64,000 bases of DNA from Epiperipatus broadwayi (Eukaryota; Animalia; Onychophora). The notes beneath the pieces are model-generated. The model was not told the origin of the DNA. It made no database searches and saw only the letters and a list, made by a program, of their open reading frames with translations. The stretch lies in contig JAQFVV010000009.1 of assembly GCA_028023455.1 (NCBI GenBank), positions 17,112,001-17,176,000 of the forward strand. The letters are read 5' to 3'. A program made the position numbers and the translations under genes. Within the stretch, counting starts at the first letter, position 1, and every line of letters starts with the position of its first letter. Positions 19,301-64,000 of the stretch are shown here, piece after piece.

Positions 19301-19644
19301 CCATGCTTTATTTTTGTCTGTCATAATTGTATAATTGGGAAAAATCTTTATCATTTACACAAACATTCATTCTGCCTTATCAGGCACTGAGAAGAAAGAC
19401 CATGGTGTTTCTTGATCTTAAACTCAGAGGTAAAAAGCCAATAAACTCACCACGCTGGCTAATGCGTGTTGGTGAGCAGCCCATCCATGTTCGTATACTA
19501 TATGAATAAACATATAGTAATAACAGCTGCAACGACAAGAACGTATGGAGTGGACATTAGGAATTTGCCCTGCTCGGTTCCTTTAAGGCCTCCAAGAGGA
19601 ATCAAAGGGTCTCCTTTCAGTTAATAGCAAACTCCTTTCTGCAG
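16358..19644 (-). mobile_element. Full-length RTE-clade non-LTR retrotransposon (3287 bp)
   Basis: 13-bp TSD ccatgatgttaat at 16345-16357 and 19645-19657; (TGA)n 3' tail at 16358-16372; single APE+RT ORF; ~290-bp 5' UTR. Confidence 0.95.
16375..19354 (-). pseudogene. AP endonuclease-reverse transcriptase ORF with one frameshift and one premature stop
   Basis: APE motifs ([36 protein letters not shown]); RT motifs ([33 protein letters not shown]); frameshift near 17050; in-frame TAG at 16735-16737; C-terminal KWSWAGHIAR. Confidence 0.95.
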
Positions 19645-42455: not shown

Positions 42456-43058
42456 TTTTAGAGTACAGTTTTTAACCTGATTATAATAGAAGTGTTTTCT
42501 CACTGCCTGCATTTATCAAGCTTACCGATAATGTTACAGACATTCAGAAGATAAAATTTTACACAAAAGAAATCAGTGAAGACCAAGCATCATCTAAGAA
42601 TTTTAACTTAATCAGAAATAAAGGTTATAGGATAAATGCAGAATTACTGTGATGTATAAGTATATTTATAGTCAAAAGTAAGATTATGAAATTATCAAAG
42701 AAACTGTGGATAATATTTAAAAACAAATAAAATGTCTTTAAAAACAACTTCATTACAATAAAATATTTTACTTTTTTTTTATTATAAGCATTATGTTAAA
42801 TTTCAACATATGTATATACAGTGAAACCACGATATACACTATGTTTTGTTCCAAACCCTCCTCATGTACATAGTAATAGTGTATAATAGCCCACATTTTG
42901 AAGATAAAATTTGATTAGAATAGAATATATATTATTTAACAAACTGCAAGTGTATAATACTTTTCAATGTTCACATGTACCTAACATACACTTTTTTACA
43001 TGTATAATAAGCATATATAAAGCAAAATTATAGTATAAACAAACATTTTTAAAAATAA

Positions 43059-43422
43059 AAACAGGCAAAACTTTCTATACGTATTGCCATTCAGTGCAAG
43101 CCAGAGTAATCAATGGATGCCAGAAGGCTTGTACGTAAAATCCCCATCTAGTGCCTACTCATCCAATGTCTCCAGACTAGTTTCTGGCTTGTGATCTTCA
43201 TCAGTGAGGAGCTTTGGATCTGAGAGCACTGCACCTAGATCTTAGGATCTAATGCAACCCTCCAGTAGCCACCTTTTATCTCTACTTAACTACAAAACTA
43301 TGAGTCTTAAATTGAAAACACCATAATATTTTCAATCCAAGCTCATTAGCTTATATAGCTATACATTTTGTGTTTTAATAACAGTTTTGAGCAAGCATAA
43401 AAAATGGTGATCATGTGATGTT
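43059..43422 (-). mobile_element. Retrozyme-like insertion 1 (fold-back: long minus arm plus short inverted tail)
   Basis: Matches the 458-bp family; arms join at ~43372-43378; perfect 14-bp TSD atttttaaaaataa at 43045-43058 and 43423-43436. Confidence 0.85.
43161..43219 (-). ncRNA. Type I hammerhead ribozyme (stems I and II each with a mismatch)
   Basis: CTGATGA at 43204-43198; GAAA-CTAG-TC; GUC site with predicted cleavage between 43175 and 43174. Confidence 0.75.
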
Positions 43423-44404
43423 ATTTTTAAAAATAATAATAACATAGTTATTAATAATAAATTGAAAAAAACACATTTGCATATACTCTTCATTTACTGA
43501 AAAAATAAAAATAAAAAAAACTTCCAATACTGTATTGTATTTTTTAGATAAAGTAAATAGCAAAACGTCTGACTTTCATTGTAATTTAATATATTCTGGA
43601 TAATACTTTTTTTCCCAATAACTTTTTGTTCTTATAGAAATATAATATAGTCTTGTTAACAAAAAACTATTATCTAACTGCTTTGATGTTTTTAAGTCAG
43701 TATTAACTTTAATTATATTCCACAATTTTATAAAACCTTTAGCATTTCATTTAGAAAACATTTTATTACATGAAATATTGGACATCAAATTTGGAAAGGA
43801 TAAAAAGAATAACATGCATGCGTTTTCAACATAAACCAAAATTTTTTTATTAATGAACATGATTGTTTATCATTCTCAGAGACAGAAAAATAGTTATTGC
43901 TATAATTTAAAATTTACTTACAAAACTGTTTTAAAAAATATAATCACATACAACACTCAGAAATGGAAAATGGCTCCTTGAGCATTATAAAATGTATTAA
44001 ATTTGCAAATTTTAATGTTTTTTTTTTGTTATTGTTTTTTGTTTATTTTCATTTTTGTTTGTTTACATTTTTTTATGAATAGCATATAATTGAAGTCATG
44101 TACTTTGCAGCTTCACTGTAATTACTAATTTTTTATTATAATTATTATTATATTTATAAAATAATCACGTAAAGTGGGGATGCATGTATATCAGAAATAA
44201 AGGGTCTGTGAATAGATTTAAAAGAAGAGATTAACGCCTATTATAATTAAATTTTCAAAATAATTAGCCTATGTTTCAATATATATATACATTCAATAAT
44301 CATAATATCTGTATATATATATATTTAATATCTATAAAAATAGATATCAATCAATATCATTTTCAATAAATGATTTTGCTATATAAATTATTTAGTGTTC
44401 TGTG

Positions 44405-44840
44405 TTTTTCTGAAGGTTTGTGATGATGGTGTTCTAGCTGTATTTTTATATTGGACTATTTCCATCATCTAATATCTGTGTTGAATGTCTTTAGAAAAGT
44501 TTAATTTTAGTTAAATATTCCAAATGCATTCAACTGTTAGTAATATCACAGCAAACAGGTTAGTCTATGCACCAACTGTTAATAATATCACAGCAAACAA
44601 ATGTTAGTAATATCACAGCTAACAAGTTAGTATATGCACTAACTGTTAGTAATATCACAGCAAACAGGTTGATATTACTAACAGTTAGTGCATATACTAA
44701 CTTGTTTACTGTGATATTACTAACATTTGTTTGCTGTGATATTACTAACAGTTGGTGCATATACTAACCTGTCTGCTGTGATATTACTAACAGTTGAATG
44801 CATTTGGAATATTTAACTAAAATTAAACTTTCCTAAAGAC
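44405..44840. mobile_element. Fold-back insertion made of a PLE 3' end with ~41-bp minisatellite arms
   Basis: Palindrome 44486-44841 centred at ~44663; 15-bp TSD atttagtgttctgtg at 44390-44404 and 44841-44855; 44440-44571 is the reverse complement of ~46565-46690. Confidence 0.85.
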
Positions 44841-46017
44841 ATTTAGTGTTCTGTGCCATTTTTATCTCATGAATCTCATTTCAAATATGTACACTTGAGA
44901 AATCATATTCTGAGTTGGAAAAGTGCTGACATATTAAAAGTATAAAATTGGGATGGTGTTGCCAGAAAGTAATATATTCATAGATATTCTTTCAAAAATG
45001 AAAGTAGTACTCAAAAAAGTTAAGGGGTGGCATAATTCAAGTCTCATATAAAAAAAAAAATACTTATTGATGAAAGTTAAGTTCATCGCTTTAAATAATG
45101 GCTTGGTATATAGTGATCAGGAATTATAATCTGGGTACCTTATATAAAATAGTTATATAAATGATATATGATTTGACCATCAATCTTAATCAAACCTAAT
45201 TAAGAGATTTAAATGTTTATTATTATATTTGTTTACGATAATAAAGAGAATAGAACTTCTTGTGTTACATTCATCTATCTGTGTTTTTGTCAGTCATCAA
45301 CAATAACACTATTCATGTTCCTGATATACTAAACAAGTTGCAATTTATTTACATAACTTTTTTTTTAATCTTGAATTAACATGTATTAATAAAATAATAG
45401 TAAATATAATACAGTAAATAAATATCATTTTAAAAGAAAAATTAAAAATAAAACCTCGTTCAATCAATATTTGTAAATTAATAAACCTAATTGGCATAGG
45501 CACCATGTTCCTATTTTATCTTTCATAATTCAATAACTCTACTTAAGACTTCCTCCTGTTTGCTTAAATATCCTCATATGGAGCTGAGGACATTCTATTA
45601 TGCATCATGAGAATCATTTTGCATCTATTTTCACTGCAGCTAACTATATTTATGAGTTAAAAACTATTATACTTTAGTTTTTCTGTCAGTTAATGGAAGC
45701 TATAGTCAAAGGGGATATGCATTTACATTTTAGAAAGGTCAAATTTAAGCGGGAATCAATTACTCGGTTTAGAGCTAAAGATGCTATGATACTACTTGAA
45801 AATATTGCTAAAAAAATCTTAAATAACAACAATCTTAAAGAGACAACAAAAAGAACTATCAAAAGAAAAAACAATTACTGGTACTGTAATGTACCCATAC
45901 ATTCCAAAAATAGCAGACAAATTAAGAAAAATCTGCAATCAGTATAATATCACAACAGCTTTCCAAAACTATACTACACTATAAGGAATTCTAACATCTA
46001 CAAAGCCTAAAATTGAA

Positions 46018-46359
46018 ATGCTAAAAAGAAAAAACCGCATCTATAAAATACAATGTGAATGTGGAAGAATGTATATTGGTGAGACTTGTCGTCCCATTGA
46101 AAATTACTTACAAGTACACAAACTGATGATTAGAAGAGAGAAAACAAATGTGTCTAAGGTAGCAAACCATGTATGTACCAGTAAACATATGTTCAATTTG
46201 GTAAATATAAAAATATCGGATAGAGAAGAAAAGATACAAAGAAGAAAATTTAAAGAAGCTGCTCATATGATAATGGTGAACAACCCCATAAGTCAACCTA
46301 GTGTGACTATACATAATGTATGGAAATCACTAATCATCTTTGCTCTTAGGAAAAAGTGA
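46018..46359 (+). pseudogene. GIY-YIG endonuclease domain of a PLE
   Basis: IYKIQCECGRMYIGETCR...H...ANHV...H.F...KFKEA. Confidence 0.85.
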
Positions 46360-46417
46360 AGAAATCAGGTGGAATTTCATAGATAAGTATATGAAATTTC
46401 TACTGACTGTTGTCTTT

Positions 46418-46500
46418 GGCAGTTTGGCTCAGTTGGTTAGAACATTACCTTAAAATTCAATATTCAAGAATCTAAGGGTCCACGTTCAATTCCCATGCTA
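46418..46500 (+). other. tRNA-like module (A and B boxes) in the PLE 3' region
   Basis: TGGCTCAGTTGGTTAG (A box, from 46425) and GTTCAATTCC (B box, ~46484-46493); no intact cloverleaf. Confidence 0.55.
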
Positions 46501-49473
46501 GTATTGTCACTGATCAGGCCAGCAATACATGAAGAGTGAAGAATAATACTGCTCGAAAGATGTGCATATACTAATCTGTGTGCTATTACTAACAGTTGAA
46601 TGTATTTGGAATATTTAAAAAGTTAATTTTTTCTAAAGGCATTCAATACTAATATTAGATGAAGGAAATAATCCAATATACAAATATAATTTATAATGAA
46701 TGAATAAAAGTTGTATGTTTGAATTATTAGTAAATTTTACTTATTATGGAAACACTAGAAAACCATGAGTGGATTAATAAATGCTATCACAGTTGTATAT
46801 ATATATATATTTAGTAAGTGCATATTTTAAATACTTAAGCAATTCAAAACATTGTTAATGATTCTTTTATTAAATTAAAAATATACCAGCGAGCCATTAA
46901 TTATATAATATTAATTTTCCATATTCCCTCAAGACTTTATTGTTTAAGTATCATCATGAGAATTTTTTATCACAAACTTTTAAATAGCTCAAGATATGAT
47001 TGGGTAATATGTGTACACATATATCAAAGATTAAAGGTTATCTCTATTTACATGGATATTATCTCCTTATTTCTATATAAAGATTTTCATCTTTATTGTT
47101 TAAAGGAGGTTGTCATGACAACAGATTGAGATTGGTGATTGTTATTACTATTGACATTGTTTAAGTGCTGAGTGCTTTCAAGTATTTATATATTCTTGTG
47201 TATATATATTGTTTCTATTTTAAATGAAAAATTTGCCAAATAGTCATAGTTTTGGATTAAACTAATATTTTATCTAATTCCAGATTTTTTTCCCGGAAAA
47301 TAATAGTTTAGATTTTTTCCTTTACAAAGATTTTGGTGAATTTTGGCTAATTAAAATTTTAATAATTTCCATTTTTAAATTTCAAATTGACATTTTATTT
47401 TTAATCTGCTATTCTTTGCATTGCTATTCAAAATTAAAATCTCCAATCCTTTAAAAATAATTAATATCCTTTTCTCAACTTAATATGAATGGCATAGAAA
47501 AGTTTATTCAAAAGTTTTCTGCTAGATAATTCAGTTTTTAAAAAATCAAATCTAAAGAAAAAAATAAAATGTAAATAACCTTAAAACTTAAATATTATAT
47601 AGATCAGAATGTTGTTTCAAATCCTCCAAATCTAATATCACTGCAGAATTATCTAATTATGTCACTTTTACTATAAATAATATTGTTACTAAAGTTTTAC
47701 TTCTTTCCATTCTTCTGTTTGTAAAATAAAAAACTAATAATTAATTGTGTCTGCTAATTTTTCTGAGAAAGCCCAATTAATTCCTGAAACTTTTGTCAAC
47801 TATAAATCTAATATTCAAATCTTAGCCGTTATCCTTTCCCCCCTCTACATATTCTATCATGAGGAGATCAACTGGAACTATCTTTCAATATTTTATCATA
47901 ATTTATCTATTAACTCAGCTAAACTTAAAGTTCTTCCAAGCTCTTCATTAATTATTCAGATCTTTATAAATAGTATTAACTTTATTCTTATTTTAATATT
48001 CATATACTGAAGTGACTTTATTGCAAACTCATAAACAAGCCAGTTAGCCAACCAATATTAGTTGGTAAATTATCTACTTAATCTTAAGTTGGAAAATACA
48101 GGTCTCAAGATAATATAACAATCAAATAAATATTGATTAATTGGTTTATAAAATAATAATTTGATAGTAGCATGATGTAGTTTTCATATGCAATGAGCAT
48201 ATTAGAAGCACAAAGCTAAATTTTTTTAAAATAAAAAATTACTCTATTAAATAATTTAATAAATAAACTTATCTTAGGCAATAGTTTAGATTTAATATCA
48301 AACAAATATAGAAAACACATGCCCATCTTATTTAAAAAACTAAAGATACTTTTAATTTATACTACTGACTACAAAAATTTTAACTGCAATAATTTTTATT
48401 CTGAAAAATAAAGCAACATATAAAATTTAATTTATTATTTTTATAAAAATAAATCATATAATATTCTAAAATTGTCTATAGTTAACAAGCTACTATTAAA
48501 GTGATACTTTCAAATAGATGAGCAATAATCTATTGTTGTTGTTGTTTTACAAACTATACAAATAAAATAAAAATTAAAAAAAACTGAAACTATTTATGAC
48601 ATATAAACCTGTTATTAAGAATGATGAAGAAGTCTAAAGTTAAATTTTCCAGTTTCTAAAAAAATGAGTTTATTCATAGACGTTTTTAGTTAATATATAA
48701 ACACTCTTATAAACTGCAATAAATTTGGATGAACATGATTCAAGAGACTACTTTGCTGTCTACAGAATTTTATATTTAATGATTTATTTGTTCTATAATA
48801 ATGGTACAGTTAAAAGATTATGGTTGTGCCATAGGAGCAATATGACATAAATTTAAAAAAATATAAGGAAATTTTTTGAATACGATAAATTATAAGAGTA
48901 AGAATAAACCTATTTACATTTAGGTTGTAGTTTGGAATTCTCACTGAGATGTAACAATACTGAGACCTTTAATATAAAAGATATTATATTTTTCCTAATT
49001 ATAAACATGTTTTAATTAATTATTATTTGTGTAATGAATTTCCTTAATATAAAAGTGGCAATAGTTTGTTTTAGTTTTTCATACTTATTTCATTTTATTG
49101 TCTTTAATCATTTAGGTTAATAGAAACTGGCCATTGGGGGTTTCTTATCATTAGTTATCTACCCCAACTGACAGATAATTATGCAACCATATCTCCACCC
49201 TTTAATTTTATATATAGAAATTCCATAACCAAATTTTTTATTTCTTTGTTTCTTTGATTTTAACTTTTGATTCTCTCACTTTCTATTTTTCTTTCTTTGT
49301 TTTTAACCTTTAATTCTTTGACTCTCTAACTTTTTTTTTACTTCTTCTGAAATTTATGGTAATTTACAATCTCTTTAATAGAAGAATAAATAAAATGCAT
49401 TATTAATTAAGAATTATATTAAAAAACTTTGATTAACATAGTTGCCATCAATATTAAAAAGATATTTCCTCAG

Positions 49474-50005
49474 AAGCCTTCTGGCATCCATTGATTACTC
49501 TGGTTGGCCCTGAGTGGCACTACTGTATGGAGAGTTTTGCCTGTTTTAATAACAGTAATGTGCTAGCATAAAAAATAGTGATCATATGATGTTTAGTGGT
49601 TTAACACCAATCCTGCCTAATAGGATAGTGGTGGCTATGGTTGTTAAAGAGCCAAAGACATCAAAATGTATAGGTACTGAAGTGGATTCAGACCCATATG
49701 ATTATATAAGCTATTGAGCTTAGATTGAAAATATTATTGTGTTTTAAATTTTATTCTAATAGTTTTGTAGTTAAGTAGAGATAAAAGGTGGCTTCTGGAG
49801 GATTGCATTAGATCCTAAGATCTAGGTGCAGTGCTCTCAGATGCAAAGCTCATCACTGATGAAGGCCACAAGCCAGAAACTAGTCTGGGGATATTGGATG
49901 AGTAGGCACTAGATAGGAATTTTGTGCACAAGCCTTCTGGCATCCATTGATTGCTGTGGTTGGCACTGAGTGGCACTACTATATGGAGAGTTTTGCCTGT
50001 TTTAA
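49474..50005 (+). mobile_element. Retrozyme-like insertion 2: one ~456-bp unit plus ~76-bp terminal redundancy
   Basis: aagccttctggcatcc...gttttgcctgttttaa occurs at both ends (from ~49474 and ~49930). Confidence 0.85.
49841..49899 (+). ncRNA. Type I hammerhead ribozyme
   Basis: CTGATGA 49856-49862; GGC/GCC stem II; GAAACTAGTC with predicted cleavage after 49885; one stem I mismatch. Confidence 0.85.
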
Positions 50006-50406
50006 GAAACAATTATTTAAGGAACTTTTTTAATTGTTAACAATTTGCTGGAAAGAAGAAAGAAATAATTACTATCAAATTTTCTTTATTAGTTTAAATT
50101 CTGTTGAGATATCATAGACTGACATTTTTATCTATGATTCATTATAATATTCAGATATACTATTGGTCTTTCAAGATATCAATGACATTTAAAAGATAAC
50201 AAATTAATAATATATAAACTGCCATTACTTGCACATATATTTTATATTATCAAAGTATATATTCACATGATCACCATTTCTTATGTTTGCTCATAACTGT
50301 TTTAAAACAGCAAAACTCTCCATATAGTAATGCAACTCAGTGCAAGCCAGAGTAATTAATGGATGCCGGAAGGCTTGTGCATAAAATCCCTAACTATTGT
50401 TTACCC

Positions 50407-50458
50407 ATTCAATATTTTCTGACTAGTTTCTAGCTTGTGGCTTTCATCAGTGAGGAGT
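50407..50458 (-). ncRNA. Hammerhead ribozyme with decayed stem I
   Basis: CTGATGA-A-AGC-CACAA-GCT-A-GAAA-CTAG-TC; 3' strand of stem I mutated (AGAAAA). Confidence 0.6.
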
Positions 50459-50964
50459 CTTAAGATCTAATGCAACCCTCCAGCAGCCATATTTTCTCTC
50501 TACTTAACTACAAAAGTATGAGAATAAAATTGAAAACACAATAATATTTTTTCAATCCAAGCTCATTAGCTTATATAGTGATATAGGTCTGAATTCAGTT
50601 CAGTACTCATACATTTTGGTGTTTTGGTTCTTTAATAACAATAGCCACCACTATCCTATTAGGCAGGATTAGTAATAAACCATTAAACATCACATGATCA
50701 CCATTTCTTATGCTTTCTCATAACTGTTATTAAAATAGACAAAACTCTTCATACAGTAGTGCCACTCATAATGGTACCTATGGTTACTAAAGAACCAAAG
50801 ACACCAAAATGCATGGGTGCTGAACTGAGTTCAGACCTATATGACTATATAAGCTAATGAACTTGGATTGAAAATATTATTGTGTTTTCCAATTTTATTC
50901 TCATAGTTTTGTAGTTAAATAGAGATCAAAGGTGGATCCTAAGATCTAGGTGCAGTGTTCTCAG

Positions 50965-51023
50965 ATCCAAGGCTCCTCACTGATGAAAGCCACGAGCTAG
51001 AAACTAGTTTGGGGATATTGTAT
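50965..51023 (+). ncRNA. Type I hammerhead ribozyme
   Basis: CTGATGA 50980-50986; AGC/GCT stem II; GAAACTAGTT with predicted cleavage after 51009; stem I TCCTCA/TGGGGA. Confidence 0.85.
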
Positions 51024-53398
51024 AGAAAAGCACTAGATAGGGATTTATGCACAAGCCTTCTGGCATCCATTGATTACTCTGGCTTGCACTGAGTGGCACT
51101 ACTGTATGGAGAGTTTTGCCTGTTTTAATTCAAATTATATATTGAATCTCATTCTTGAAAGCATATAAATCTCAATAATTTTTAGGATATAATTATTACC
51201 AAAAAAATTATTTGCACTCTTTATTGATATTTAAAAATATAAGCCAAGAAATATACCAAGACAATATTTAAATAGACATTTATAACCAATTGTAAATATG
51301 TATTAAATACTATATTAGTGTCATTCATGGGTAAGTCCTTTTTAAAATAAAAATAGCTGTTTAAGATCATCAAAATGTTTATTTAATACCTTTAAAAAAT
51401 AGTACAATGTAAAAACATTTTATTTTTTTAGTGATTGTATTCTAAAAAATATAGATTTTTTTTTTTCTATTATAAGATTTGAAATATAAAATACATTGGT
51501 TAGTTGTAATTAGTAAATTTTGAAACCAAAATTTTGGCCAACAAGAAAACTGTTTTATCTTTATTGACAGAATTGTATAACAAATAATGAATTGATACAT
51601 ATGATTATGATGCTATTAAAAGTTCTTTATCATTCCATGTCACATCACATATGATTCCTCAGCCATCTACCTCATTTGACTTCATCAATAAAGATTTATG
51701 ATCCAAGGCTGGAACTAATTAATTCCTTCAAACTATTTAACCTAATAATCAGATATTCAAAAAACCATTAAGGTTTTAAACCTAAACCAGCTTGCTTCAA
51801 TATCTAGCATCAATATGTTTAAGTTATGCTACTGTAGTTTCTTTCAGCTCTTTGGCAAGAAACACTAAAACCAACAAAACAAAACGATTTTCTCAATTAA
51901 ACTAGCTTAAAGAATAAGCGGATCCATTCTATTCTTGATCCTTTAACAATAAAGTATTATTCATTCATAACTTGAGAGGAGAATGGTTTACTCCACTATT
52001 CAAGCTAATAATCTGAAATTAAAAATAAAAAAAACTAGGAAGATTTTGAATCCAAGTCATAGTCAAATAAATCATTTGCAATTATAGAGATCTGAAACAA
52101 TATCACTAGCTATATGTATATATATTCAAGCACACAAATGAATTTTATTATAGTTGTATTATTGTACCATAATAATGTAAATTTTCAAAACAAATAAATT
52201 ATTTAACGTCAATTAGTTCTTCCTAAATGAAATATGTGATTAATTAAGTACACTTAATTCATTCTAATATAATAATCTTGAATACAAATAGTCTACTAAT
52301 TAAATATTAAATCTTGAATGAATATGGTTTACAAAACTTATTTGGTTGTTATAATAACTGTAATTTAGCATTATATATTCATGGATAAAAGGTATGAATG
52401 CAACTTTCAGGAGAGAGAGAAAATAAAAGTTGATTAATATTATGCAGATAAAAATTCTAAAACAGATTAATAGGTGCAATATAAATAAAAATAAACAGCA
52501 ATCAGAAGAATTGAGAAAAATATATACAAAATAAAACTTAGAATGATAATTCAGTATTATTCTTAATAACAATATTTATATTTAATGTAAACATAAATTA
52601 TAAATTTAAAAGTAATGTCAATATTGATGTTATAAAGTATAAACAGTTTAAAAAACGAAATAATTTAAAAATATTAATCTTAACAAATTATATATAAATT
52701 AAATATAATTTCAAATAATGTTGATTAAATCATTTTAAAGAGGTCTACTAGAAAAAAAAATGAAGATAAGAAACATATTTAAAAAAACCACATCAATAAG
52801 GAACAACCTGGGGGTAATTAATAATTAATAGGTATGAAAATGACTAAATATCCTTTTCTTCTTTCTTTCTTTTTTAACAATTAATTTTATTAATTCAAAA
52901 GACTAAAGGTCTGTCTCACTTTATTTTCTTAGAATATACAGCCAAATAATAGTAAAATACTAATGAAAAAAATAAAGCTAATTGATTATCATTTTAAGAA
53001 AAAAAAAAAATTCTCTTTAACTAACCTGACCCACTTCTAGTAATGATGGATTAGTGATATAGGTTTTCTTTAGAAAAACAATGGAACTTTTAATATATAT
53101 AAGATGTTTAATAATGCAGTTAACCATGTACATACCATCTCCACACCTATAAGAAAAAAAAAAACCTTAGATATATATTTATATCTGTGGGTGTGTCTTC
53201 CAGCAAAGTGTAATTAATAAAATTCTAAGATAAAATGAAGGGTAAATCAAAACAGTAGGATGCTATTTTGTTTAAACAATATGTTGAAATACATAATAAG
53301 CAAAACTCTCTCCATACAGTAGTGCCACTCTAAGCAAGACAGGGTAATCAATGGATGCCAGAAGGCTTATGCATAAAATCCCTATCTATTGCCTACTC

Positions 53399-53457
53399 AT
53401 CCAATATCCCCAAACTAGTTTCTGGCTTATGGCCTTCGTCAGTGAGGAGCCTTGGAT
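53399..53457 (-). ncRNA. Type I hammerhead ribozyme
   Basis: CTGACGA, GGC/GCC, GAAACTAGTT; complete stem I and extension. Confidence 0.85.
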
Positions 53458-53856
53458 CTGAGAGTACTGCACCTAGATCTTAGGATCTAATGCAAACCTC
53501 AACCAGCCACCTTTTAACTCTACATAACTACTAAACTATGAGAATACAATTGAAAACACACAGATAACATCAATCTAAGCTCAATAGCTCAAATAGTCAT
53601 ATGGGTCTGAACTCAGTTCAGCACCCATACATTTTGGTGTCTTTGGCTCTTTTACAACCATAGCCACTACCTTCCTATAAGGCAGGATTGGTATTAAACC
53701 TTAAAACATCACATGATCACTATCTCTCATGCTTGCTCATAACTGTTGTTATAATAGGCAAAACTCTCTCAATACAGTAGTGCCACTCTAAGCAAGACAG
53801 AGTAATCAATGGATGCCAGAAGGCTTGTGCATAAAATCCCTATCTATTGCCTACTC

Positions 53857-53915
53857 ATCCAATATCCCCAAACTAGTTTCTGGCTTATGGCCTTCGTCAG
53901 TGAGGAGCCTAGGAT
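53857..53915 (-). ncRNA. Type I hammerhead ribozyme
   Basis: Same motif 458 bp away; one change in the stem I extension. Confidence 0.85.
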
Positions 53916-54319
53916 CTGAGAGTACTGCACCTAGATCTTAGGATCTGATGCAACCCTCCAGCAGCCACCTTTTAACTCTACATAACTACTAAACTATGAG
54001 AATAAAATTGAAAACACACAGATATTTTCAACAGTTATGAGCAAGCATGAAAGATAGTGATCATGTGATGTTTTAAGGTTTAATACCAATCCTGCCTTAC
54101 AGGAAGGTGGTGGCTATGGTTGTAAAAGAGCCAAAGACACCAAAATGTGTGGGTGCTGAACTGAGTTCAGACCCATATAACTATTTGAGCTATTGAGCTT
54201 AGATTGAAAATATCTGTGTGTTTTCAATTTTATTCTCATAGTTTAGTAGTTATGTACAGTTAAAAGGTGGCTGCTGGAGGGTTGTATCAGATCCTAAGAT
54301 CTAGGTGCAGTACTCTCAG

Positions 54320-54378
54320 ATCCAAGGCTCCTCACTGACAAAGGCCATAAGCCAGAAACTAGTTTGGGGATATTGGAT
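54320..54378 (+). ncRNA. Hammerhead ribozyme with a G8A core mutation (CTGACAA), predicted inactive
   Basis: Core at 54335-54341 reads CTGACAA. Confidence 0.8.
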
Positions 54379-54777
54379 GAGTAGGCACTAGATAGGGATT
54401 TTATGCACAAGCCTTCTGGCATCCATTGATTACTCTGTCTTGCTTAGAGTGGCACTACTGTATGGAGAGAGTTTTGCCTATTATAACAACAGTTATGAGC
54501 AAGCATGGAAGATAGTGATCATGTGATGTTTTAAGGTTTAATACCAATCCTGCCTTATAGGAAGGTGGTGGCTATGGTTGTAAAAGAGCCAAAGACACCA
54601 AAATGTATGGGTGCTGAACTGAGTTCAGACCCATATGACTATTTGAGCTATTGAGCTTAGATTGAAAATATCTGTGTGTTTTCAATTTTATTCTCATAGT
54701 TTAGTAGTTATGTAGAGTTAAAAGGTGGCTGCTGGAGGGTTGCATTAGATCCTAAGATCTAGGTGCAGTGCTCTCAG

Positions 54778-54836
54778 ATCCAAGGCTCCTCACTGACGAA
54801 GGCCATAAGCCAGAAACTAGTTTGGGGATATTGGAT
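54778..54836 (+). ncRNA. Type I hammerhead ribozyme
   Basis: ATCCAA-GGC-TCCTCA-CTGACGA-A-GGC-CATAA-GCC-A-GAAA-CTAG-TT / TGGGGA-TA-TTGGAT; predicted cleavage after 54822. Confidence 0.9.
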
Positions 54837-55235
54837 GAGTAGGCACTAGATAGGGATTTTATGCACAAGCCTTCTGGCATCCATTGATTACTCTGTCTTG
54901 CTTAGAGTGGCACTACTGTATGGAGAGAGTTTTGCCTATTATAACAACAGTTATGAGCAAGCATGGAAGATAGTGATCATGTGATGTTTTAAGGTTTAAT
55001 ACCAATCCTGCCTTATAGGAAGGTGGTGGCTATGGTTGTAAAAGAGCCAAAGACACCAAAATGTATGGGTGCTGAACTGAGTTCAGACCCATATGACTAT
55101 TTGAGCTATTGAGCTTAGATTGAAAATATCTGTGTGTTTTCAATTTTATTCTCATAGTTTAGTAGTTATGTAGAGTTAAAAGGTGGCTGCTGGAGGGTTG
55201 CATTAGATCCTAAGATCTAGGTGCAGTGCTCTCAG

Positions 55236-55294
55236 ATCCAAGGCTCCTCACTGACGAAGGCCATAAGCCAGAAACTAGTTTGGGGATATTGGAT
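55236..55294 (+). ncRNA. Type I hammerhead ribozyme
   Basis: Same motif as 54778-54836; predicted cleavage after 55280. Confidence 0.9.
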
Positions 55295-56223
55295 GAATAG
55301 GCAATAGATAGGGATTTTATGCATAAGCCTTCTGGCATCCATTGATTAATCTGTCTTGCTTAAAGTGGCACTACTGTATGGAGAGAGTTTTGCCTATTAT
55401 AACAACAGTTATGAGCAAGCATGAAAGATAGTGATCATGAAATGTTGAAACATATGGATATGGTGCTATTTGATATTTATAATCAAACTAAAACTTAGTT
55501 TATTTTTCATTTTCAATTGTCTGTTTCGTTAAATAATTAGTAAACCTTCAGAAAATTACAAATTCATTTCAAAACTTTAAAAATGCTGTAAGTATAAAAA
55601 GTAAAAAAAAAAAACATTTAAATACAGCTCACATAAAATTTAAATACAGCTCACATAAAAGTTTTTAAATAATGATAAAAATGCATGACTTAAAATACCC
55701 TATTTCAAGGTCATTCTTGAGAGTCCTTTTACATCACTGAAAAATAATGAAAAAAAACAACAACTCATCTTCCAGATTAAAAAAATAAATTGTTTACTAA
55801 TTTAATTAGAATTAAATATTAATATAAGCCCAGTATTGAAAAAAATTACTAATCTTGTTTAGAAAATCCTCTATTATCACAATCAATTGGCCAAACACAA
55901 ACTCATGACTTCACAATCAACTTCATCATGAAATTAATTTGTTATATATATATGTAAACACAAGGAGTAAATCACCCTACCTCTAGGTTATGAATTAAAA
56001 GCAATCTAAATTTACTCTCTTTGTTCATATCTGAGCTATGTTTAATTTAAAGTTTATATACACACACATGCAAGATAAAACAAAAGTAGAGTGACTTATT
56101 ATATAAGCAAGTAATTTATGAACATATTTAAATTTTTCTGATATAGTGATCAGAAACAAAATTTATATTTTCATCTATGCAAATGTACTTTATTCATAAG
56201 ATATATGACAAAGCACTGACCTT

Positions 56224-56321
56224 TATAGTCAAGCATTGGTGATCGAGAGGTGCTTTACAAGCAGTTGTCCCGAGTTAGCGGGTTCGCTTCCAGGCTGATG
56301 CTATGACACACGAGAAAAAAA
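56224..56321 (+). mobile_element. Short tRNA-Gly-derived SINE/retrocopy with poly(A) tail
   Basis: 14-bp TSD aaagcactgacctt at 56210-56223 and 56322-56335; GCATTGGTG...GGGTTCGCTTCCAGGCTGATGC resembles the 5' and 3' ends of tRNA-Gly(GCC); A-run before the TSD. Confidence 0.75.
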
Positions 56322-56559
56322 AAAGCACTGACCTTACAACATTAAAGTCTAATTTACACACTACAACTAACTTTTTTATATGATAATATTAAATCGTGCT
56401 ATCACACTTCCAACGTAAAGCTGTAACTACAAATAGAAAACTAAATTAAATGGCTGAGCTCTTTCAAGAAGATGTACTTCTCATATTCACAGCCAGTTAT
56501 GATTCTTTCTTTGAAATCATTATATAAATAAATACCATATGCAAATTCTATGCAAATGA

Positions 56560-57000
56560 GTCACTAAGACCATCTTTTAGATATAGCAAAACATGCATCC
56601 TTACGATTAATGGCGAAGGAGTCCTCTGCTATAAAGTAAGCTTATTTTACCTTTCGCTTAATATCATGCCTCTCAGTGCACACTAATTTTGCAGATGTGG
56701 ATTCGAACACATGTCCTGACATTTTTTGATGTTGTGCAAAAATTGAAGTGCATTCTGGATCACTATGAGCCTTATTGTATCTATACTTGTGTTGTGATAT
56801 CCTAGTAGCTATGATGGCTCTTGTTTCACCATAGTATGATGCTTTGCATCCATTATGAGAGCATGCCACTCTGTACACAGCCTGTGGGGTCTGATCAGAA
56901 AGTATAGTGTCTTTAATGTTGTTAATAAGCCATTTAATTTAGTTTTCTATTTGTTGTTACAGCTTTACGTTGGAAGTGTGATAGCACGATTTAATTTTAT
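56560..57000 (-). pseudogene. PLE GIY-YIG relic
   Basis: VYRVACSHNGCKASYYGETR..ATRISQH...IFAQHQKMSGHVF...KRKVK (ORF 56642-56878). Confidence 0.8.
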
Positions 57001-57893
57001 CGTATTGAAGACAAACATAAAGTATAAATCTACTGGTTATAACTAACCTTTTTATATATTAATGTTTAGAAAATCCCATTTTAATAAAAAAGTTCATTCC
57101 AAAGCAATTAAATAAATTAATAAATAACATTATTATTTAGAGCCTTCTTAGTTATGATTCATTCTTTATGTATATATTTATACTGAGATAATAAGTAAAA
57201 ATAAATCATGGCTATATTCATATGATACTTCCTCTATCACAAACAAAAAAGTTTGTATCATATTACAATTAACTTTTTCTTATAACATCAGTACATCAAA
57301 ACTCATCTGTCTAACCCATTTTTTTAATCCTGTCAGATGACAATACCTACATATTCTTCTAGTTAGGTTGGATGCTAGAAGAATCTTAAGCTTATCTGAA
57401 AATTTCTCAATTATCTAAAAAAGAAATCTCACTCTCTTCCAAATTTGCACTCCAGATCCTAAGCATCACAATTAAACATAACAACAAAAGGCATACTAAA
57501 CAACCAAGTTAAAATTACTAAAATATCATGTGAAAATATTAATATTTAATTTATCCTGAAAATTATGAGATATTTATTTCTTCTTTTCTAAGTTTGCCTA
57601 ACTATGATCCTATGCTATTTGAATGGTGTCAGCATAGGAAGTGAACATTGCGGTAGAAGCTTAAAAAAAATTTGCTTCTTGAAGATTTTACAATTAATTT
57701 CTGACTATTATGATAAAAGTATCTTACTCTAATATAAATAAGACAGGCCAATAAACATCACATGATCACCATTTCTTATGCTTGCTTATAACTGTCACTA
57801 AAATAGGCAAAACTATCCATACAGAATTGCCACTCAGTGCAAACCAGAATAATCAATGGATGCCAGAAGGCTTGTGCATAAAATCCCCATCTA

Positions 57894-57952
57894 ATCCAAT
57901 ATCCCCAGACTAGTTTCTGGCTTATGGCCGTCGTCAGTGAGGAGCCTTGGAT
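57894..57952 (-). ncRNA. Type I hammerhead ribozyme
   Basis: CTGACGA-C-GGC-CATAA-GCC-A-GAAACTAGTC-TGGGGA; GUC site with predicted cleavage between 57908 and 57907. Confidence 0.85.
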
Positions 57953-58568
57953 CTGAGAGAACTACACCTAGATCCTAGTATCTAATGCAACCCTCCAGCA
58001 GCCATCTTTTATCTCTACTTAACTACAAAACTATGAATCTTAAATTGAAAACACAATACTTTCAATCCAAGCTCATTAGCTTATATAGTCATATGGGTCT
58101 GAATCCACTTCAGTATCTATACATTTGGGTGTCTTTGGTTCTTTAATAACCATAGCCACCACTATCCTATTAGCAGGATTGGTTTTAGCCAATAAACATC
58201 ACATGATCACCATTTCTTATGCTTGCTTACAACTGTTATTAAAACAAGCAAAACTCTCCATACGGTATTGCCACTCAGTGCTTGTTTTAATACGTTATAA
58301 GCAGACATAAGAAATGGTGATCATGTGATGTTTTTGGCTTAAAATCCAATCCTGCCTAATAGGATAGTGGTGGCTATGATTATTAAAGAACTAAAGACAC
58401 CAAAACGTATAGGTACTGAACTGAATTCAAACCTATACGATTATATAAGCTTATGAGCTTGAATTGAAAATATTGTGTTTTCAATTTAAGACTCATAGTT
58501 TTGCAGAGATAAAAGATGATTGCTGGTGGATTGCATTAGATCCTAAGATCTAGGTGCAGTGCTCTTAG

Positions 58569-58628
58569 ATCCTAAGGCTCCTCACTGATGAAGGCTACAA
58601 GCCAGAAACAAATCTGGGGATATTGGAT
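58569..58628 (+). ncRNA. Hammerhead ribozyme with disrupted stem III (GAAACAAATC)
   Basis: CTGATGA 58585-58591; the ACTAGT palindrome is lost. Confidence 0.65.
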
Positions 58629-59169
58629 GAGTAGGCACTAGATGGGGATTTTATGCACAAGCCTTCTGGCATCTATTGATTACTCGGGCTTGCACTGTGT
58701 GGCAATAGTGTATGGAGAGTTTTGCCTGTTTTAATAAATGAAACAAGTAAAAATCTTATATATCACATTGTACAGCAAAATCCTCTTTAGCATAAGCTAA
58801 AGATTTTCATGATTATTCTTATTTATATTAAAAGGTAGTTAAACATATCTAACTACCTATTTATTAAGTAATATTTGAGAAACTAGCTAAGTTAACTATA
58901 GGCCAGCTCACTAAAAAAAAAACTTAAACTTATTTGGTACCCACAGTTATCTGAAATAACTCTCAAGATCATCCAGATTCCAATACTATACAATGAAACT
59001 TTTATATATATACCCAAATAAAATGTCCCTTAATTAAAAACTATTGTAATAACAATAAAAATAATAAATATAAAAATAATTAACTATTATACACAGTCTT
59101 TAAATCCGCAGAAGTACTTTTGGTTAATTCCTTAATCCACCTCAACTGACGATAAATTAAAAAAACATA

Positions 59170-60830
59170 ATGGAAGCAAATGACATCAACTCAAATACCA
59201 TGAATCCCAAATTTTATTGCTAGCAGCTTATCTCTTCATTATATTCATTTTATTTCTATTTATTAAAATTGCTGCCTTAATTTTTCTTTTATTGTGGTTT
59301 CTCTCTTCATGAAGAATCTTAACATTTTCAATATCAAACTTAAATTTATATTTATATGTCCTTTCATGATCCAAGAAATTCTCTTCATGAAGAATCTTAA
59401 CATTTTCAATATCAAACTTAAATTTATATTTATATGTCCTTTCATGATCCAAGAAAACTGAAGCAGTCATTAAATCATTATTAATTTGATCTTTTATTAA
59501 TACTGCACCTCAATTCACCTATATATAATACCATACATCCATAAAAAATTTGATACACAACATTATTTTTCTGCTTGACAGGTATGATATTTTTAGAATT
59601 ATTCACTAACTTATTAACTTTATTTGTAACATAAAATGAAACATTATACACATCCTTATATATATCCTTAAAAAATTTCACTTGATTATTTGAAATATAT
59701 GGAACACATATTTATTTTTTATTATCAATCTTCAACTCCTTTAAATCATTATAAATCTTTTTAAATTGACATCAAGTATTGTTAATCTGTTCAATCTTAT
59801 AACCAACTTCAAACAATTCCTTGGCAAATATCTCAATTTTTTTTTTTAATTTATCACACTGGTAATGACATAATTTTTCATTACAAAATAAGAGAGATTT
59901 AAAACTTGCCATCTTATGCATAATTGATACTTTTGATTTACATTTTATATAGCCCTCTTTTTGTAATAGTTTGATTATTAATTTATAACTTAACATGCTA
60001 TTATCTCTTGTAATAATTAAATCCAAATACTTAATATTTTGGTCCTGTTCCTTTTCAAAAGTCCATTTCAAGCCATTTAAATTGTTTAACTCTTCTACAA
60101 GCAAATTTATAGTATTGGTATTTCCACAAACAAAAACATCATCCACATACCTTTTGTAAATTTTAATATCTTTAAAATTACACATATCTAAAATACTACT
60201 CTCATATGTAGACAAAACCAAATTGCAAACTTGTGCAATGACAGATAGATCCATAGGCCAACCTTTAGACATTTTATAATATCCACCTTCAAAAGAAGCA
60301 ACAATGTTATCATCAAAAAAATGTAAAAAATCAGTAATAAATTGTATCACATATTTGCAAACACCTTTACTTTTTAATGCATGTTCAATTATTTTTATAA
60401 AATCCATTCTACCAATAGAAATGTACATTTCTGTCACATCTAATGAAGCAATGACATCACTATATTTTTAATTATCTACAAAATCAAATGATGAAGCAAT
60501 AGTATTTTCTCCAAATCCTAAAAACTCTTGTAACATCTTACCAGTATATTTAGACATTTAATATATAAATGAACCACCAAAATCAATCTAATTTGCAAAG
60601 GATTATCTTCTTTATGTAACTTTATATTTGCAAAAATATGAGGATATATAGCGTAAGAAGAATATATCTTATAGTACTGAAACAGTTCGATCTGAGGATC
60701 GATCTTAGTTTCATGGTTTTTTTTTTTCTTTCCTTGTTTGTTTTGGTTGTTTTCAAATATTAGTATAGCAGATTTGCTGTAAACCATTATTTCGCACGAG
60801 GCTTTGTTCATCCAAGCTACATAAACTTAA
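59170..60830 (-). pseudogene. Penelope-like element RT + GIY-YIG, disrupted
   Basis: IKLHKEDNPL (ORF 60518-60811); YYKMSKGWPM and YKRYVDDVF (ORF 59772-60437); NNVVYQI..GC..LYIGE (ORF 59481-59681); C-terminal KIKAAILI with a 78-bp in-frame tandem duplication at 59302-59456. Confidence 0.9.
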
Positions 60831-63654: not shown

Positions 63655-64000
63655 TCAAACTTCTAAATATACTGGTATGTTGTTACAAGAGTTTTTAGGA
63701 TTTGGGAAAAATAGAATTGCTTCATCTTTTGATTCTGTACATAGATTTAAAAATATAATGATTAATGACAGTGATGTACATAGATTTAAAAATATAATAA
63801 TTAATGACTGTGATGTTATTGCTTCATTAGATGTAACAGAAATGTGTGGTTCTATTGATAGGGTGGGTTTCATTAAAATAATTGAACATGCACTAAAAAG
63901 TAAAAGTGTTTTCAAATATGTAATATAATTTATTATTGATTCTTTAAAATTTTTTGATAACATTGTTGCTTCTTTTGAATATGGATATTATAAAATGTCT
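63655..64000 (+). pseudogene. Second copy of the same PLE RT family, cut by the window end
   Basis: LLQEFLGFG..IASSFD...IASLDVTEM.GSIDRVGFIKIIEHALKSK matches 60300-60570 (minus); 39-bp in-frame duplication at 63737-63814. Confidence 0.85.

Follow-up and report, generated by a model that had tools for sequence, protein, structure and literature searches.

Introduction

The newt satellite 2, Schistosoma Sm-alpha and Dolichopoda pDo500 repeats are transcribed in their own species. Like the family described here, they measure a few hundred bp, occur both in tandem and dispersed, and carry type I hammerheads. In the canonical metazoan form of this motif, helix I has 6 bp, helix II has 4 bp, and helix III has 1–2 bp with a palindromic loop, the motif being active as a dimer (PMC4209133); the newt motif was active solely as a dimer, according to the account of Forster 1988 given in PMC4209133. 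Metazoan non-LTR retrozymes are ~230 nt long in coral, ~350–390 nt in mussel and ~350 nt in axolotl (Cervera and de la Pena 2020, PMC7229834).

Hammerheads are also found in Penelope-like elements (PLEs), the insertions of which contain partial tandems and an inverted 5′-truncated copy, and often have a tail on just one side (PMC8557442). Biochemical work showed that PLE reverse transcription starts at two adjacent internal sites and that both strands of AT-rich targets are cut and extended (PMC11167929). In the PLE studied in vitro, hammerhead cleavage requires protein, hammerhead mutants insert normally and no reads end at the cleavage site (PMC11167929). The minimal hammerheads of PLEs have low in vitro activity (PMC4209133).

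Here we describe a hammerhead-bearing repeat family in the onychophoran Epiperipatus broadwayi, found in a 64,000-nucleotide stretch of contig JAQFVV010000009.1 (hereafter the window). Because its insertion anatomy matches that of PLEs, the family is best read as a non-autonomous, PLE-mobilised non-LTR retrozyme, with hammerhead cleavage predicted from its architecture; we assign this sequence-based reading a probability of roughly 0.7. The family adds a new, well-documented case to the known animal retrozymes and is not a new kind of element.

Eleven hammerhead-type motifs in a non-coding 458-bp repeat

A search of the window for CTGANGA-N8-20-GAAACTAGT returned nine exact matches versus none in 100 shuffles, and BLAST with a 101-nt motif region located 11 copies, on both strands, between 43059 and 58734. 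These results bear out the 11 hammerhead-type copies reported by a first-pass annotation, and the motifs are copies of one repeat family, not independent chance events. The anatomy it had proposed also holds. Helix I contains 6 bp (UCCUCA/UGGGGA) and is continued past an internal loop by AUCCAA/UUGGAU, the core is CUGANGA, and helix II is GGC/GCC with a 5-nt loop, flanked by an A·A opposition that is replaced by a U-A pair in one subfamily. On the 3′ side of helix II follow GAAA, the palindrome ACUAGU and then GUC in older copies or GUU in young ones. This layout is the canonical one for metazoan type I hammerheads, with 6 bp in helix I and 4 bp in helix II, in contrast to the "minimal" PLE form with its long helix II (PMC4209133).

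The reference motif (54770–54842, plus strand) comprises distal helix I (54778–54783 paired with 54832–54837), helix I (54787–54792 paired with 54823–54828), the core CUGACGA (54793–54799), helix II (54801–54803 paired with 54809–54811), GAAA (54813–54816), the palindrome ACUAGU (54816–54821) and U17 at 54822, after which the cut is predicted. The register is correct for the cuts predicted earlier, after 54822, 55280 and 49885. An intact core is present in nine of the 11 motifs, one of the others having a G8>A change and one lacking the helix III palindrome. Among the young copies, the motif at 55228–55300 (plus; predicted cut after 55280) and those at 53393–53465 and 53851–53923 (both minus) have intact cores and GUU sites, the last with one distal helix I position altered. 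The copy at 54312–54384 (plus) has the core mutation G8>A (CTGACAA), a product of CpG decay, and is presumed inactive. The motif at 49833–49905 (plus; predicted cut after 49885) is of the older type, with CUGAUGA, the loop CACAA, GUC and two mismatches in helix I. A compensated helix II variant, AGC/GCU, occurs both at 50401–50473 (minus), which has an intact core and lies in the most diverged unit (79% identity), and at 50957–51029 (plus), which has a GUU site and a degraded distal helix I. Cores are likewise intact at 43155–43227 (minus), with a GUC site and a degraded helix II (GAU/GCC), and at 57888–57960 (minus), with C at position 10.1, a GUC site and a 10-nt deletion immediately 3′ of distal helix I. 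The palindrome is lost (ACAAAU) at 58561–58634 (plus), which presumably cannot make a dimeric helix III.

The repeat period is 458 bp (TRF: 54029–55446, 3.1 copies, 98%) and the longest ORF in a unit trimer is 49–62 aa, confirming that the unit is non-coding and of the length first estimated (~458 bp). Its RNA is predicted to be strongly self-paired, with a folding energy of −159.8 kcal/mol (z = −6.6).

Head-to-head insertions with two fixed 3′ ends

The 11 motifs fall in five separate insertions, four of which are head-to-head, two-armed composites flanked by target site duplications (TSDs) of ~12–14 bp. The arms end at two putative reverse-transcription start sites, located at 54936–55001 (plus) in the reference unit. 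Site A is at unit position q458 (window 54944), the unit boundary, within a small AC-rich hairpin of the predicted fold, and site B is at q44–57 (54988–55001), ~45–57 nt downstream; the stretch between them is termed the tail.

The first composite (43059–43422) has an inverted arm at 43058–43358 (q153–456) that ends at site A and a forward arm at 43371–43422 (q451–458 plus q1–44) that consists of the tail piece only, between exact 14-bp TSDs, ATTTTTAAAAATAA, at 43045–43058 and 43423–43436. In the composite at 50263–51128, the inverted arm (50263–50767) runs from q419 through one unit to a tail end at q40 and the forward arm (50772–51128, q80–458) ends at site A; its ~12-bp TSD contains one mismatch, and the right-hand copy is shifted by 2 nt. 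The young composite at 53293–55446 consists of an inverted arm (53293–54031; q176–458 plus one unit) ending at site A and a forward arm (54029–55446) of 3.1 tandem units ending in the tail (q37–44), with the TSD ATGTTGAAA(+3) at 53281–53292 and 55442–55453. In the fourth (57748–58734), the inverted arm (57748–58281) runs from q414 through one unit to a tail end at q50, the forward arm (about 58282–58734) ends at site A, and the likely TSD (57734–57747 and 58734–58747) has 14 bp, 11 of them matching. The remaining insertion (49474–50005, plus) is a single 5′-truncated forward arm, q381–458 and one full unit, with its 3′ end at site A (..GCCTGTTTTAA); neither an inverted arm nor a clear TSD was found for it.

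This anatomy recurs across the genome. Head-to-head composites account for 35 of 41 sampled insertions, and 61 of 67 3′ ends fall within two windows of the unit, q441–16 and q40–62. One end of each kind is present in 31 of the 35 composites, and none has two tails (binomial P 8e-9). Exact flanking repeats of at least 11 bp flank 16 of the 35, versus 4 of 1190 mismatched-flank controls. The arms span up to three complete tandem 458-bp units with no coding part, and 5′ truncation is variable among dispersed insertions. These TSDs, 5′-truncated arms and defined 3′ ends, together with more than 100,000 dispersed copies and a self-paired unit RNA, support the initial proposal of a non-autonomous retroelement whose type I hammerhead-type motif has a palindromic helix III.

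The tandem copies, and the five arrays clustered within 15.7 kb, would also be expected of ordinary satellite DNA, or of a DNA-level fold-back rearrangement, with a relic motif and without retrotransposition. Such a reading does not account for thousands of dispersed short insertions that have separate TSDs, defined 3′ ends and a varying degree of 5′ truncation, and the sequences flanking the individual arrays in the window bear no relation to each other. It is already strongly disfavoured, and we regard it as extremely improbable.

Mobilisation of a SINE-like element by a LINE with an AP endonuclease, with inverted arms arising by twin priming, would have a candidate enzyme source in the intact LINE ORF (endonuclease and RT) at 17033–19354 of the window, and TSDs of 12–15 bp with 5′ truncation fit LINEs too. 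However, twin priming would place the end of the inverted arm at a variable internal position, whereas both outer ends here map to two fixed positions within the unit, each insertion having one of either kind. The repeat insertions showed neither a poly(A) nor a simple-repeat tail, and ARAGORN detects neither a tRNA-like gene nor a tRNA-derived head in the repeat. The combination of a hammerhead with multimeric arms and a one-sided tail has been published as specific to PLEs (PMC11167929, PMC8557442). We consider LINE mobilisation very unlikely.

Penelope-like elements as the likely mobiliser

The Penelope-type footprint of the five insertions suggests that they were mobilised by PLE machinery. 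PLEs and the present family have in common partial tandems, a neighbouring 5′-truncated copy in inverted orientation and AT-rich targets (PMC8557442, PMC11167929), as well as an optional extension, or tail, at one end only (PMC8557442), although it measures ~45–57 nt here versus the 30–40 nt quoted for PLEs. EN+ PLEs are very abundant in the genome (10,240 and 78,772 first-look candidates), and PLE copies are present in the window itself.

This abundance also bears on whether the copies form a separate family at all, as they might be solo or tandem pseudo-LTR (pLTR) fragments of a 5′-truncated autonomous PLE with a hammerhead in its pLTR. PLE insertions are strongly 5′-truncated (PMC8557442), their hammerheads sit in pLTRs (PMC4209133), and such fragments would leave an identical insertion footprint. 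Yet the arms cross up to three whole tandem units without reaching a coding part, and for 30 motif loci sampled at random, no PLE ORF was found within 1.5 kb. Across 28 PLE loci from at least three families, no autonomous PLE sharing the unit sequence came to light, the only matches being separate neighbouring insertions. We consider a pLTR origin improbable. The family differs from PLEs in size and content, as PLEs are 2.3–4 kb long with an RT/GIY-YIG ORF and the 458-bp unit has no such ORF, and no resemblance was found between its sequence and those of the PLE families sampled from the genome.

A mechanism can be proposed on this basis. Genomic arrays would be transcribed into multimeric RNA that folds into the strongly self-paired structure predicted for the unit. 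Since helix III has only 2 bp, within the palindrome ACUAGU, the active fold would form only when two copies pair, and unit-length RNAs may then be released and could be circularised, a step modelled on the motif architecture and on published retrozymes. A PLE RT/GIY-YIG endonuclease, the enzyme that the observed footprint suggests, would act in trans and nick both strands of AT-rich DNA with a ~12–15-bp stagger. The cDNA would start at two fixed internal RNA sites ~50 nt apart, one per DNA strand, and the two cDNAs would run inward through one to several units, halt at variable points and be joined, giving a head-to-head composite that is flanked by a TSD and has its tail on one side only.

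Conservation of the hammerhead and its possible role

The 5.6-Gb genome contains 103,491 motif matches, versus 5 for a control, and nearly all copies belong to one superfamily, the young ones being 98–100% identical. No subfamily consensus departs from the hammerhead at any core position. In a family alignment, pairing is seen in 94% of the cells that make up the proposed structure, compared with 21–45% when partners are slid. Helix II shows G-C to A-U compensation in this alignment, and further variants occur genome-wide (AAC/GUU, AUU/GAU and U-A at 10.1/11.1). The covariation within the family is thin, a single pair, and probably represents one lineage. In contigs of four other organisms, GUC occupies the predicted cleavage site in ~99% of cases, and the variants listed in 54735–54851 are found only at N7, loop 2 and H17, positions that the hammerhead leaves free.

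The element may nevertheless be mobile with a hammerhead that no longer self-cleaves in vivo, the motif being kept as a structural or protein-binding RNA part inherited from PLEs, or only within a long RNA-closing helix. At 10.1/11.1 most copies carry an A·A opposition, and GUU is the site in the youngest and most successful subfamily; by established hammerhead biochemistry, both features may reduce cleavage activity. The search with Rfam RF00163 that had been suggested at the outset gave no match even at E ≤ 10, nor did any of the Rfam 15 hammerhead models at that threshold with 131–141-nt pieces. Only one of 77 arm starts lies within q321–340, around the predicted cut, so that cDNA 5′ ends show no excess there and reverse transcription does not appear to use self-cleaved monomers as its usual template. 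The normal insertion of PLE hammerhead mutants and the protein requirement of cleavage in vitro (PMC11167929), as well as the weak activity of minimal PLE hammerheads (PMC4209133), fit the loss of self-cleavage. Against it, the core is preserved in each subfamily consensus, helix II changes are compensated, the listed between-species variants are confined to free positions, and in animal retrozymes, hammerheads with this architecture self-cleave, either as monomers or as dimers, and circular RNAs are produced in abundance (PMC7229834). Loss of cleavage seems unlikely, though it is a serious contender. Because the DNA copies give no sign that cleaved ends are the usual template ends, the hammerhead, under the favoured reading, is more likely to serve RNA processing, the formation of circles or the assembly of RNPs than to define the cDNA.

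Comparison with other hammerhead elements

The unit, at 458 bp, lies at or above the top of the 150–450 bp range reported for retrozymes (PMC7229834). Both have TSDs of more than 4 bp and highly self-paired predicted RNA, and both reach ~10^5 copies (up to 120,000 motifs in axolotl; PMC7229834). The short palindromic helix III would imply dimer-dependent cleavage, as in amphibian retrozymes (PMC7229834). Cleavage and circles have been demonstrated for retrozymes (PMC7229834), whereas the present family is known from DNA copies. These copies display a resolved footprint, with two fixed 3′ ends, a one-sided tail and an inverted arm; we did not find such an integration footprint described for retrozymes in the retrozyme literature examined. 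Plant LTR retrozymes (PMC4918200) are also non-autonomous retroelements with hammerheads and structured RNA, but their hammerheads are of type III, they possess LTRs, PBS/PPT and 4-bp TSDs, and they depend on Gypsy elements for mobilisation; none of these features is seen here.

Newt satellite 2, Sm-alpha and pDo500 differ from the present unit in sequence and are represented in Rfam, by which the present family is undetected; the pDo500 hammerhead also has a different helix layout (PMC2837043). In the present unit, ARAGORN finds no tRNA-like gene of the kind expected of a Pol III SINE head. As in PLEs, the hammerhead lies upstream of the two RT start sites, which are putative in the present family, with the predicted cut ~120 and ~170 nt from them here versus roughly 90 nt in the Poseidon element PAc (PMC11167929), and site A, like the PAc start site, is located in a small AC-rich hairpin (PMC11167929).

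A non-coding 458-bp repeat carries a hammerhead-type motif

The pattern CTGANGA-N8-20-GAAACTAGT gave nine matches in the window, which lie on both strands and span 43.1 to 58.0 kb, and none across 100 dinucleotide-preserving shuffles of the same sequence. BLAST with the 101-nt motif region as query recovered 11 copies. The first-pass annotation had counted eleven hammerheads, and this number stands for the copies; the complete conserved core is present in nine of them, and two are damaged, one by a G8>A change (54312–54384) and one by loss of the helix III palindrome (58561–58634). The copy at 43155–43227 has a degraded helix II. Tandem Repeats Finder reported a 458-bp period at 54029–55446 (3.1 copies, 98% identical), in keeping with the unit of ~458 bp described earlier, and the longest ORF in a trimer of the unit is at most 62 aa in any frame, so that the unit indeed has no meaningful ORF.

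By direct reading of the sequence, helix I of each copy is composed of 6 bp (UCCUCA/UGGGGA), and beyond an internal loop a further 6 bp (AUCCAA/UUGGAU) extend it. CUGANGA forms the core, and helix II consists of GGC/GCC around a 5-nt loop with a flanking A.A opposition. In the 3′ part of the motif, GAAA leads into the palindrome ACUAGU, after which position 17 is C or U. The catalytic core (C3 U4 G5 A6 N7 G8 A9, G12 A13 A14, A15.1-U16.1 and H17) is complete in the family consensus, where H17 is C; in the young copies it is U. Helix III has 2 bp under a 2-nt loop, and two copies must come together to form it. The anatomy and the predicted cuts after 54822, 55280 and 49885 are thus as the first-pass annotation had placed them.

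Comparison with known hammerheads

The canonical metazoan type I hammerhead of Cervera and de la Pena has a helix I of 6 bp, a helix II of 4 bp and a helix III of 1–2 bp under a small palindromic loop, and is active on pairing of two copies (PMC4209133). The unit motif has a matching layout. In an alignment of 46 copies that covered helix I (6 bp and the 6-bp extension) and helix II (3 bp and A.A or U-A), the named structure was paired in 94% of cells, compared with 21–45% for slid partners. A two-sided change occurred at only one pair among these 46 copies, covariation being thin in a young family. Helix II shows a G-C to A-U compensation, with the further variants AAC/GUU and AUU/GAU in the genome list, and in one subfamily a U-A pair replaces the A.A opposition to give a 4-bp helix II.

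The family is also present in contigs of four other organisms (runs not recorded as RNA), where its tandem joints, inverted joints and termini are as in the window family. The majority form in these contigs is CUGAUGA...GUC, and every variant listed within the segment corresponding to 54735–54851 is at N7, in loop 2 or at H17. These are the positions that the hammerhead leaves free.

A search with RF00163, the check proposed in the first-pass annotation, did not supply confirmation. No Rfam 15 hammerhead model, RF00163 or other, matched when the window was searched in full at the gathering score, and at E ≤ 10 there was no hammerhead match in 17 kb or in two 131–141-nt pieces; six Penelope-like element (PLE) loci from the same genome likewise gave no Rfam hammerhead match. 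The RF00163 model may be blind to the short-helix-III form, and operationally the unit lies outside the curated Rfam hammerhead family. The predicted cleavage activity may be lowered by the A.A opposition at 10.1/11.1 and, in the youngest subfamily, by its GUU. The RNA between two predicted cuts has a folding energy of −159.8 kcal/mol (z = −6.6), which none of 100 shuffles equaled, and in the predicted fold of the unit RNA a long closing helix extends helix I. Retrozyme RNAs have been described with such a long closing helix (PMC7229834).

The hammerhead motifs in individual copies decay freely. The young unit has a single CpG, formed by C7 and G8 of the hammerhead core, and the product of the decay of this CpG, CTGACGA>CTGACAA (G8>A), recurs in many genomic copies (for example in the core at 54335–54341). 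The window as a whole is strongly CpG-depleted (CpG o/e 0.30, GpC o/e 1.25, GC 27%).

Five insertions in the window and a large family in the genome

Self-BLAST resolved the eleven copies into five insertions, c1 (43059–43422), c2a (49474–50005), c2b (50263–51128), c3 (53293–55446) and c4 (57748–58734). The target-site duplication (TSD) is exact and 14 bp long for c1, and is 12–14 bp with one to three mismatches for c2b, c3 and c4. Four of the five are head-to-head composites in which an inverted arm is followed by a forward arm, and the 5′ truncation point differs for each arm. As arms from different insertions are just 77–90% identical and the flanks are unrelated, the insertions represent separate events. 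There are five of them in 15.7 kb (43059–58734), whereas the genome has a motif every 54 kb or so, which suggests that insertion favors this locality or that the copies are nested close to others of Penelope type. Units of opposite arms of c3 also have variants in common (q260 C, q284 A, q360 A and q380 T, numbered along the 458-bp unit) that are private to this insertion, being absent, or nearly so, elsewhere; these derive either from a heterogeneous multimeric template or from gene conversion between the arms.

A first-look search of the 5.6-Gb assembly matched the unit at least 2,305 times, and many of these matches are 98–100% identical. For copy number, the core pattern CTGANGA-N13-GAAACTAGTY gave 103,491 genomic matches, against five for the reversed control. 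The flanks were alike at all matches but one among ~30 loci taken in order on one contig, which indicates one superfamily. Sampled locus L014 holds, at ~1990–2080 (+), another repeat that is unrelated to the unit but also has a hammerhead-like core; the two have the GAAACUAGU helix III palindrome in common and differ in helices I and II.

The unit family has the DNA anatomy of a non-LTR retrozyme, a non-coding tandem with a type I hammerhead-type motif in each unit that is dispersed with TSDs. The dispersal with TSDs, the ORF-less tandem units and the more than 100,000 motif copies also bear out its earlier designation as a non-autonomous retroelement. In anatomy and presumed function it belongs with the described non-LTR retrozymes (PMC7229834). 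ARAGORN found no tRNA-derived head in the unit. Since a literature search by motif sequence, a weak test, returned no paper matching the family, the 458-bp family itself appears to be undescribed. The pDo500 repeat of cave crickets was also considered and was rejected, its hammerhead having another layout.

Insertions of the unit bear a Penelope-type footprint

PLEs leave partial tandems with an adjacent inverted 5′-truncated copy and a short “tail”, often at one end only (PMC8557442). In vitro, the Poseidon element PAc starts reverse transcription at two adjacent internal RNA sites, the tail being the stretch between them, and both DNA strands of AT-rich targets are cut and extended (PMC11167929); this behavior explains the published footprint. 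The unit copies likewise combine a partial tandem, an inverted 5′-truncated arm and a one-sided tail. To describe them at scale, arms were mapped in the window and in 41 genomic loci (L002–L042). Head-to-head composites made up 35 of 41 insertions, and 61 of 67 3′ ends fell within site A (q441–16) or site B (q40–62), the two inferred start sites of reverse transcription. One site-A and one site-B end were found together in 31 of the 35 composites, two site-A ends in one and two site-B ends in none; the other three had one unclassifiable end. The binomial probability of 31 mixed composites among 32 classifiable ones is 8e-9. Exact flanking repeats of at least 11 bp were present at 16 of 35 composites compared with 4 of 1190 mismatched-flank controls, and the AT content of the flanks is 76%. 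The tail measures ~45–57 nt here versus 30–40 nt published for PLEs. Site A lies within a small AC-rich hairpin in the predicted fold, and the predicted hammerhead cut is located ~120 and ~170 nt upstream of sites A and B, a geometry of cut and start sites similar to that of PAc (PMC11167929).

Composites with inverted arms could in principle also have been made by twin priming of a LINE with an AP endonuclease. Such an origin fits poorly, as the unit copies lack an A-rich tail and their inverted arms have a fixed outer end rather than a variable one. Mobilization of a hammerhead retrozyme family by PLE machinery is the best explanation of these data, and we would put its probability at roughly 70%.

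That PLEs mobilize retrozymes has already been suggested (PMC7229834, PMC8557442, preprint 10.64898/2026.07.22.740005), and arguments about which enzymes move animal retrozymes still depend on co-occurrence and, in frogs, on resemblance to pseudo-LTR sequences (10.64898/2026.07.22.740005). A non-coding hammerhead repeat that bears the full Penelope footprint in dozens of sampled insertions is a different kind of evidence on this question. In the retrozyme literature examined, the footprint of tail, inverted arm and long TSD was not found on retrozyme copies themselves; its presence on such copies is a modest new element, the kind itself having been described already. With its recently active copies, 98–100% identical, the family lends itself to assays of cleavage, of circRNA and of integration in vitro.

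Template and cDNA ends

The 5′ starts of the arms are spread over the unit, with enrichment at q261–320 and q401–458. Around the predicted cut (q336/337) they are rare, with 1 of 77 within q321–340, so that self-cleaved linear monomers seem not to be the usual template for reverse transcription. The same holds for PAc, in which mutating the hammerhead left insertion normal and no reads ended at the cut (PMC11167929). The insertions thus form a large natural data set on cDNA starts and stops with no pile-up at the predicted ribozyme cut. Arms reach ~3 units, and those longer than one unit need multimeric or circular templates. As to rolling-circle versus multimeric templates, units of one insertion are as diverged from each other as units of different loci, and gene conversion could also account for private variants common to both arms. 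A comparison of the outermost units of the two arms, made to see if both came from the same RNA, gave no consistent pattern.

Two-armed insertions have, almost without exception, a tail at one end and none at the other. A tentative and rather unlikely reading of this one-tail rule is that a single coordinated event primes the two DNA strands from the two adjacent start sites, ~50 nt apart, with the hammerhead not setting the cDNA template ends. A possible route would be a dimeric Penelope RT/endonuclease acting on a single RNA, with one start site per protomer. Under coordinated priming, a hammerhead that does not define template ends would have its conserved role elsewhere. If true, the ORF-less hammerhead RNA, replicated >100,000-fold, would serve as a natural reporter of the mechanism and as direct structural proof that Penelope machinery moves animal retrozymes.

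The inner arm junctions of the window composites and of L002–L042 are also non-uniform, with enrichment at q401–458 and at q261–320, a stretch that begins shortly 5′ of the hammerhead and extends into it. Several are near-symmetric, as if from snap-back.

Autonomous PLEs in the genome and other elements of the window

PLEs with a GIY-YIG endonuclease (EN+) are very abundant in the genome, and the commonest EN+ family has 78,772 first-look candidates genome-wide and an ORF of up to 797 aa. One copy of this family lies at 59033–60676 (−) and another is head-to-head, with 63177–63646 (−) joined to 63653–64000 (+). Its window copies thus have the head-to-head anatomy too, with 3′ ends at two sites ~18 nt apart, and a pattern scan of them found no canonical hammerhead. 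The unit itself is not an autonomous PLE, as it has no RT or GIY-YIG ORF and none above 62 aa.

BLAST comparison of the unit with 28 PLE loci, sampled from three or more families in a genome that holds many more, found no similarity to an autonomous PLE. The PLE loci examined comprised GIY-YIG loci, six long-ORF loci and the abundant 797-aa family, and no canonical hammerhead was found in them; a hammerhead-like string in sampled locus L063 was rejected as unshared flanking DNA. A tblastn search of 42 motif loci with PLE proteins likewise uncovered no partner, and a PLE ORF lay near the motif at none of 30 random motif loci. Pfam returned no domains in three PLE ORFs (PF26215 was not among the models searched). 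A tail-to-tail adjacency of PLE and unit copies was rejected as meaningful, since it is trivial when both are head-to-head composites.

Several further features were recorded. The PLE copy at 59033–60676 contains an exact 78-bp tandem duplication (59302–59456), and a weak remnant at 45988–46260 (+) has 32% aa identity to a different PLE family, in its C-terminal GIY-YIG region. In sampled locus L059, a tRNA-like sequence lies at 3020–3099 (−) in the 3′ region of a further PLE copy (Rfam tRNA, 28.1 bits versus a 29-bit cut-off), and no hammerhead motif adjoins it there. At 44531–44796 there is a ~270-bp palindrome of 67-nt units in opposite orientation, with sub-threshold miRNA-precursor-like Rfam matches (best 37.5 bits versus a cut-off of 70). 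Finally, the window holds a LINE with an intact 773-aa ORF at 17033–19354 (−), which encodes Exo_endo_phos (AP-type endonuclease) and RVT_1 domains.
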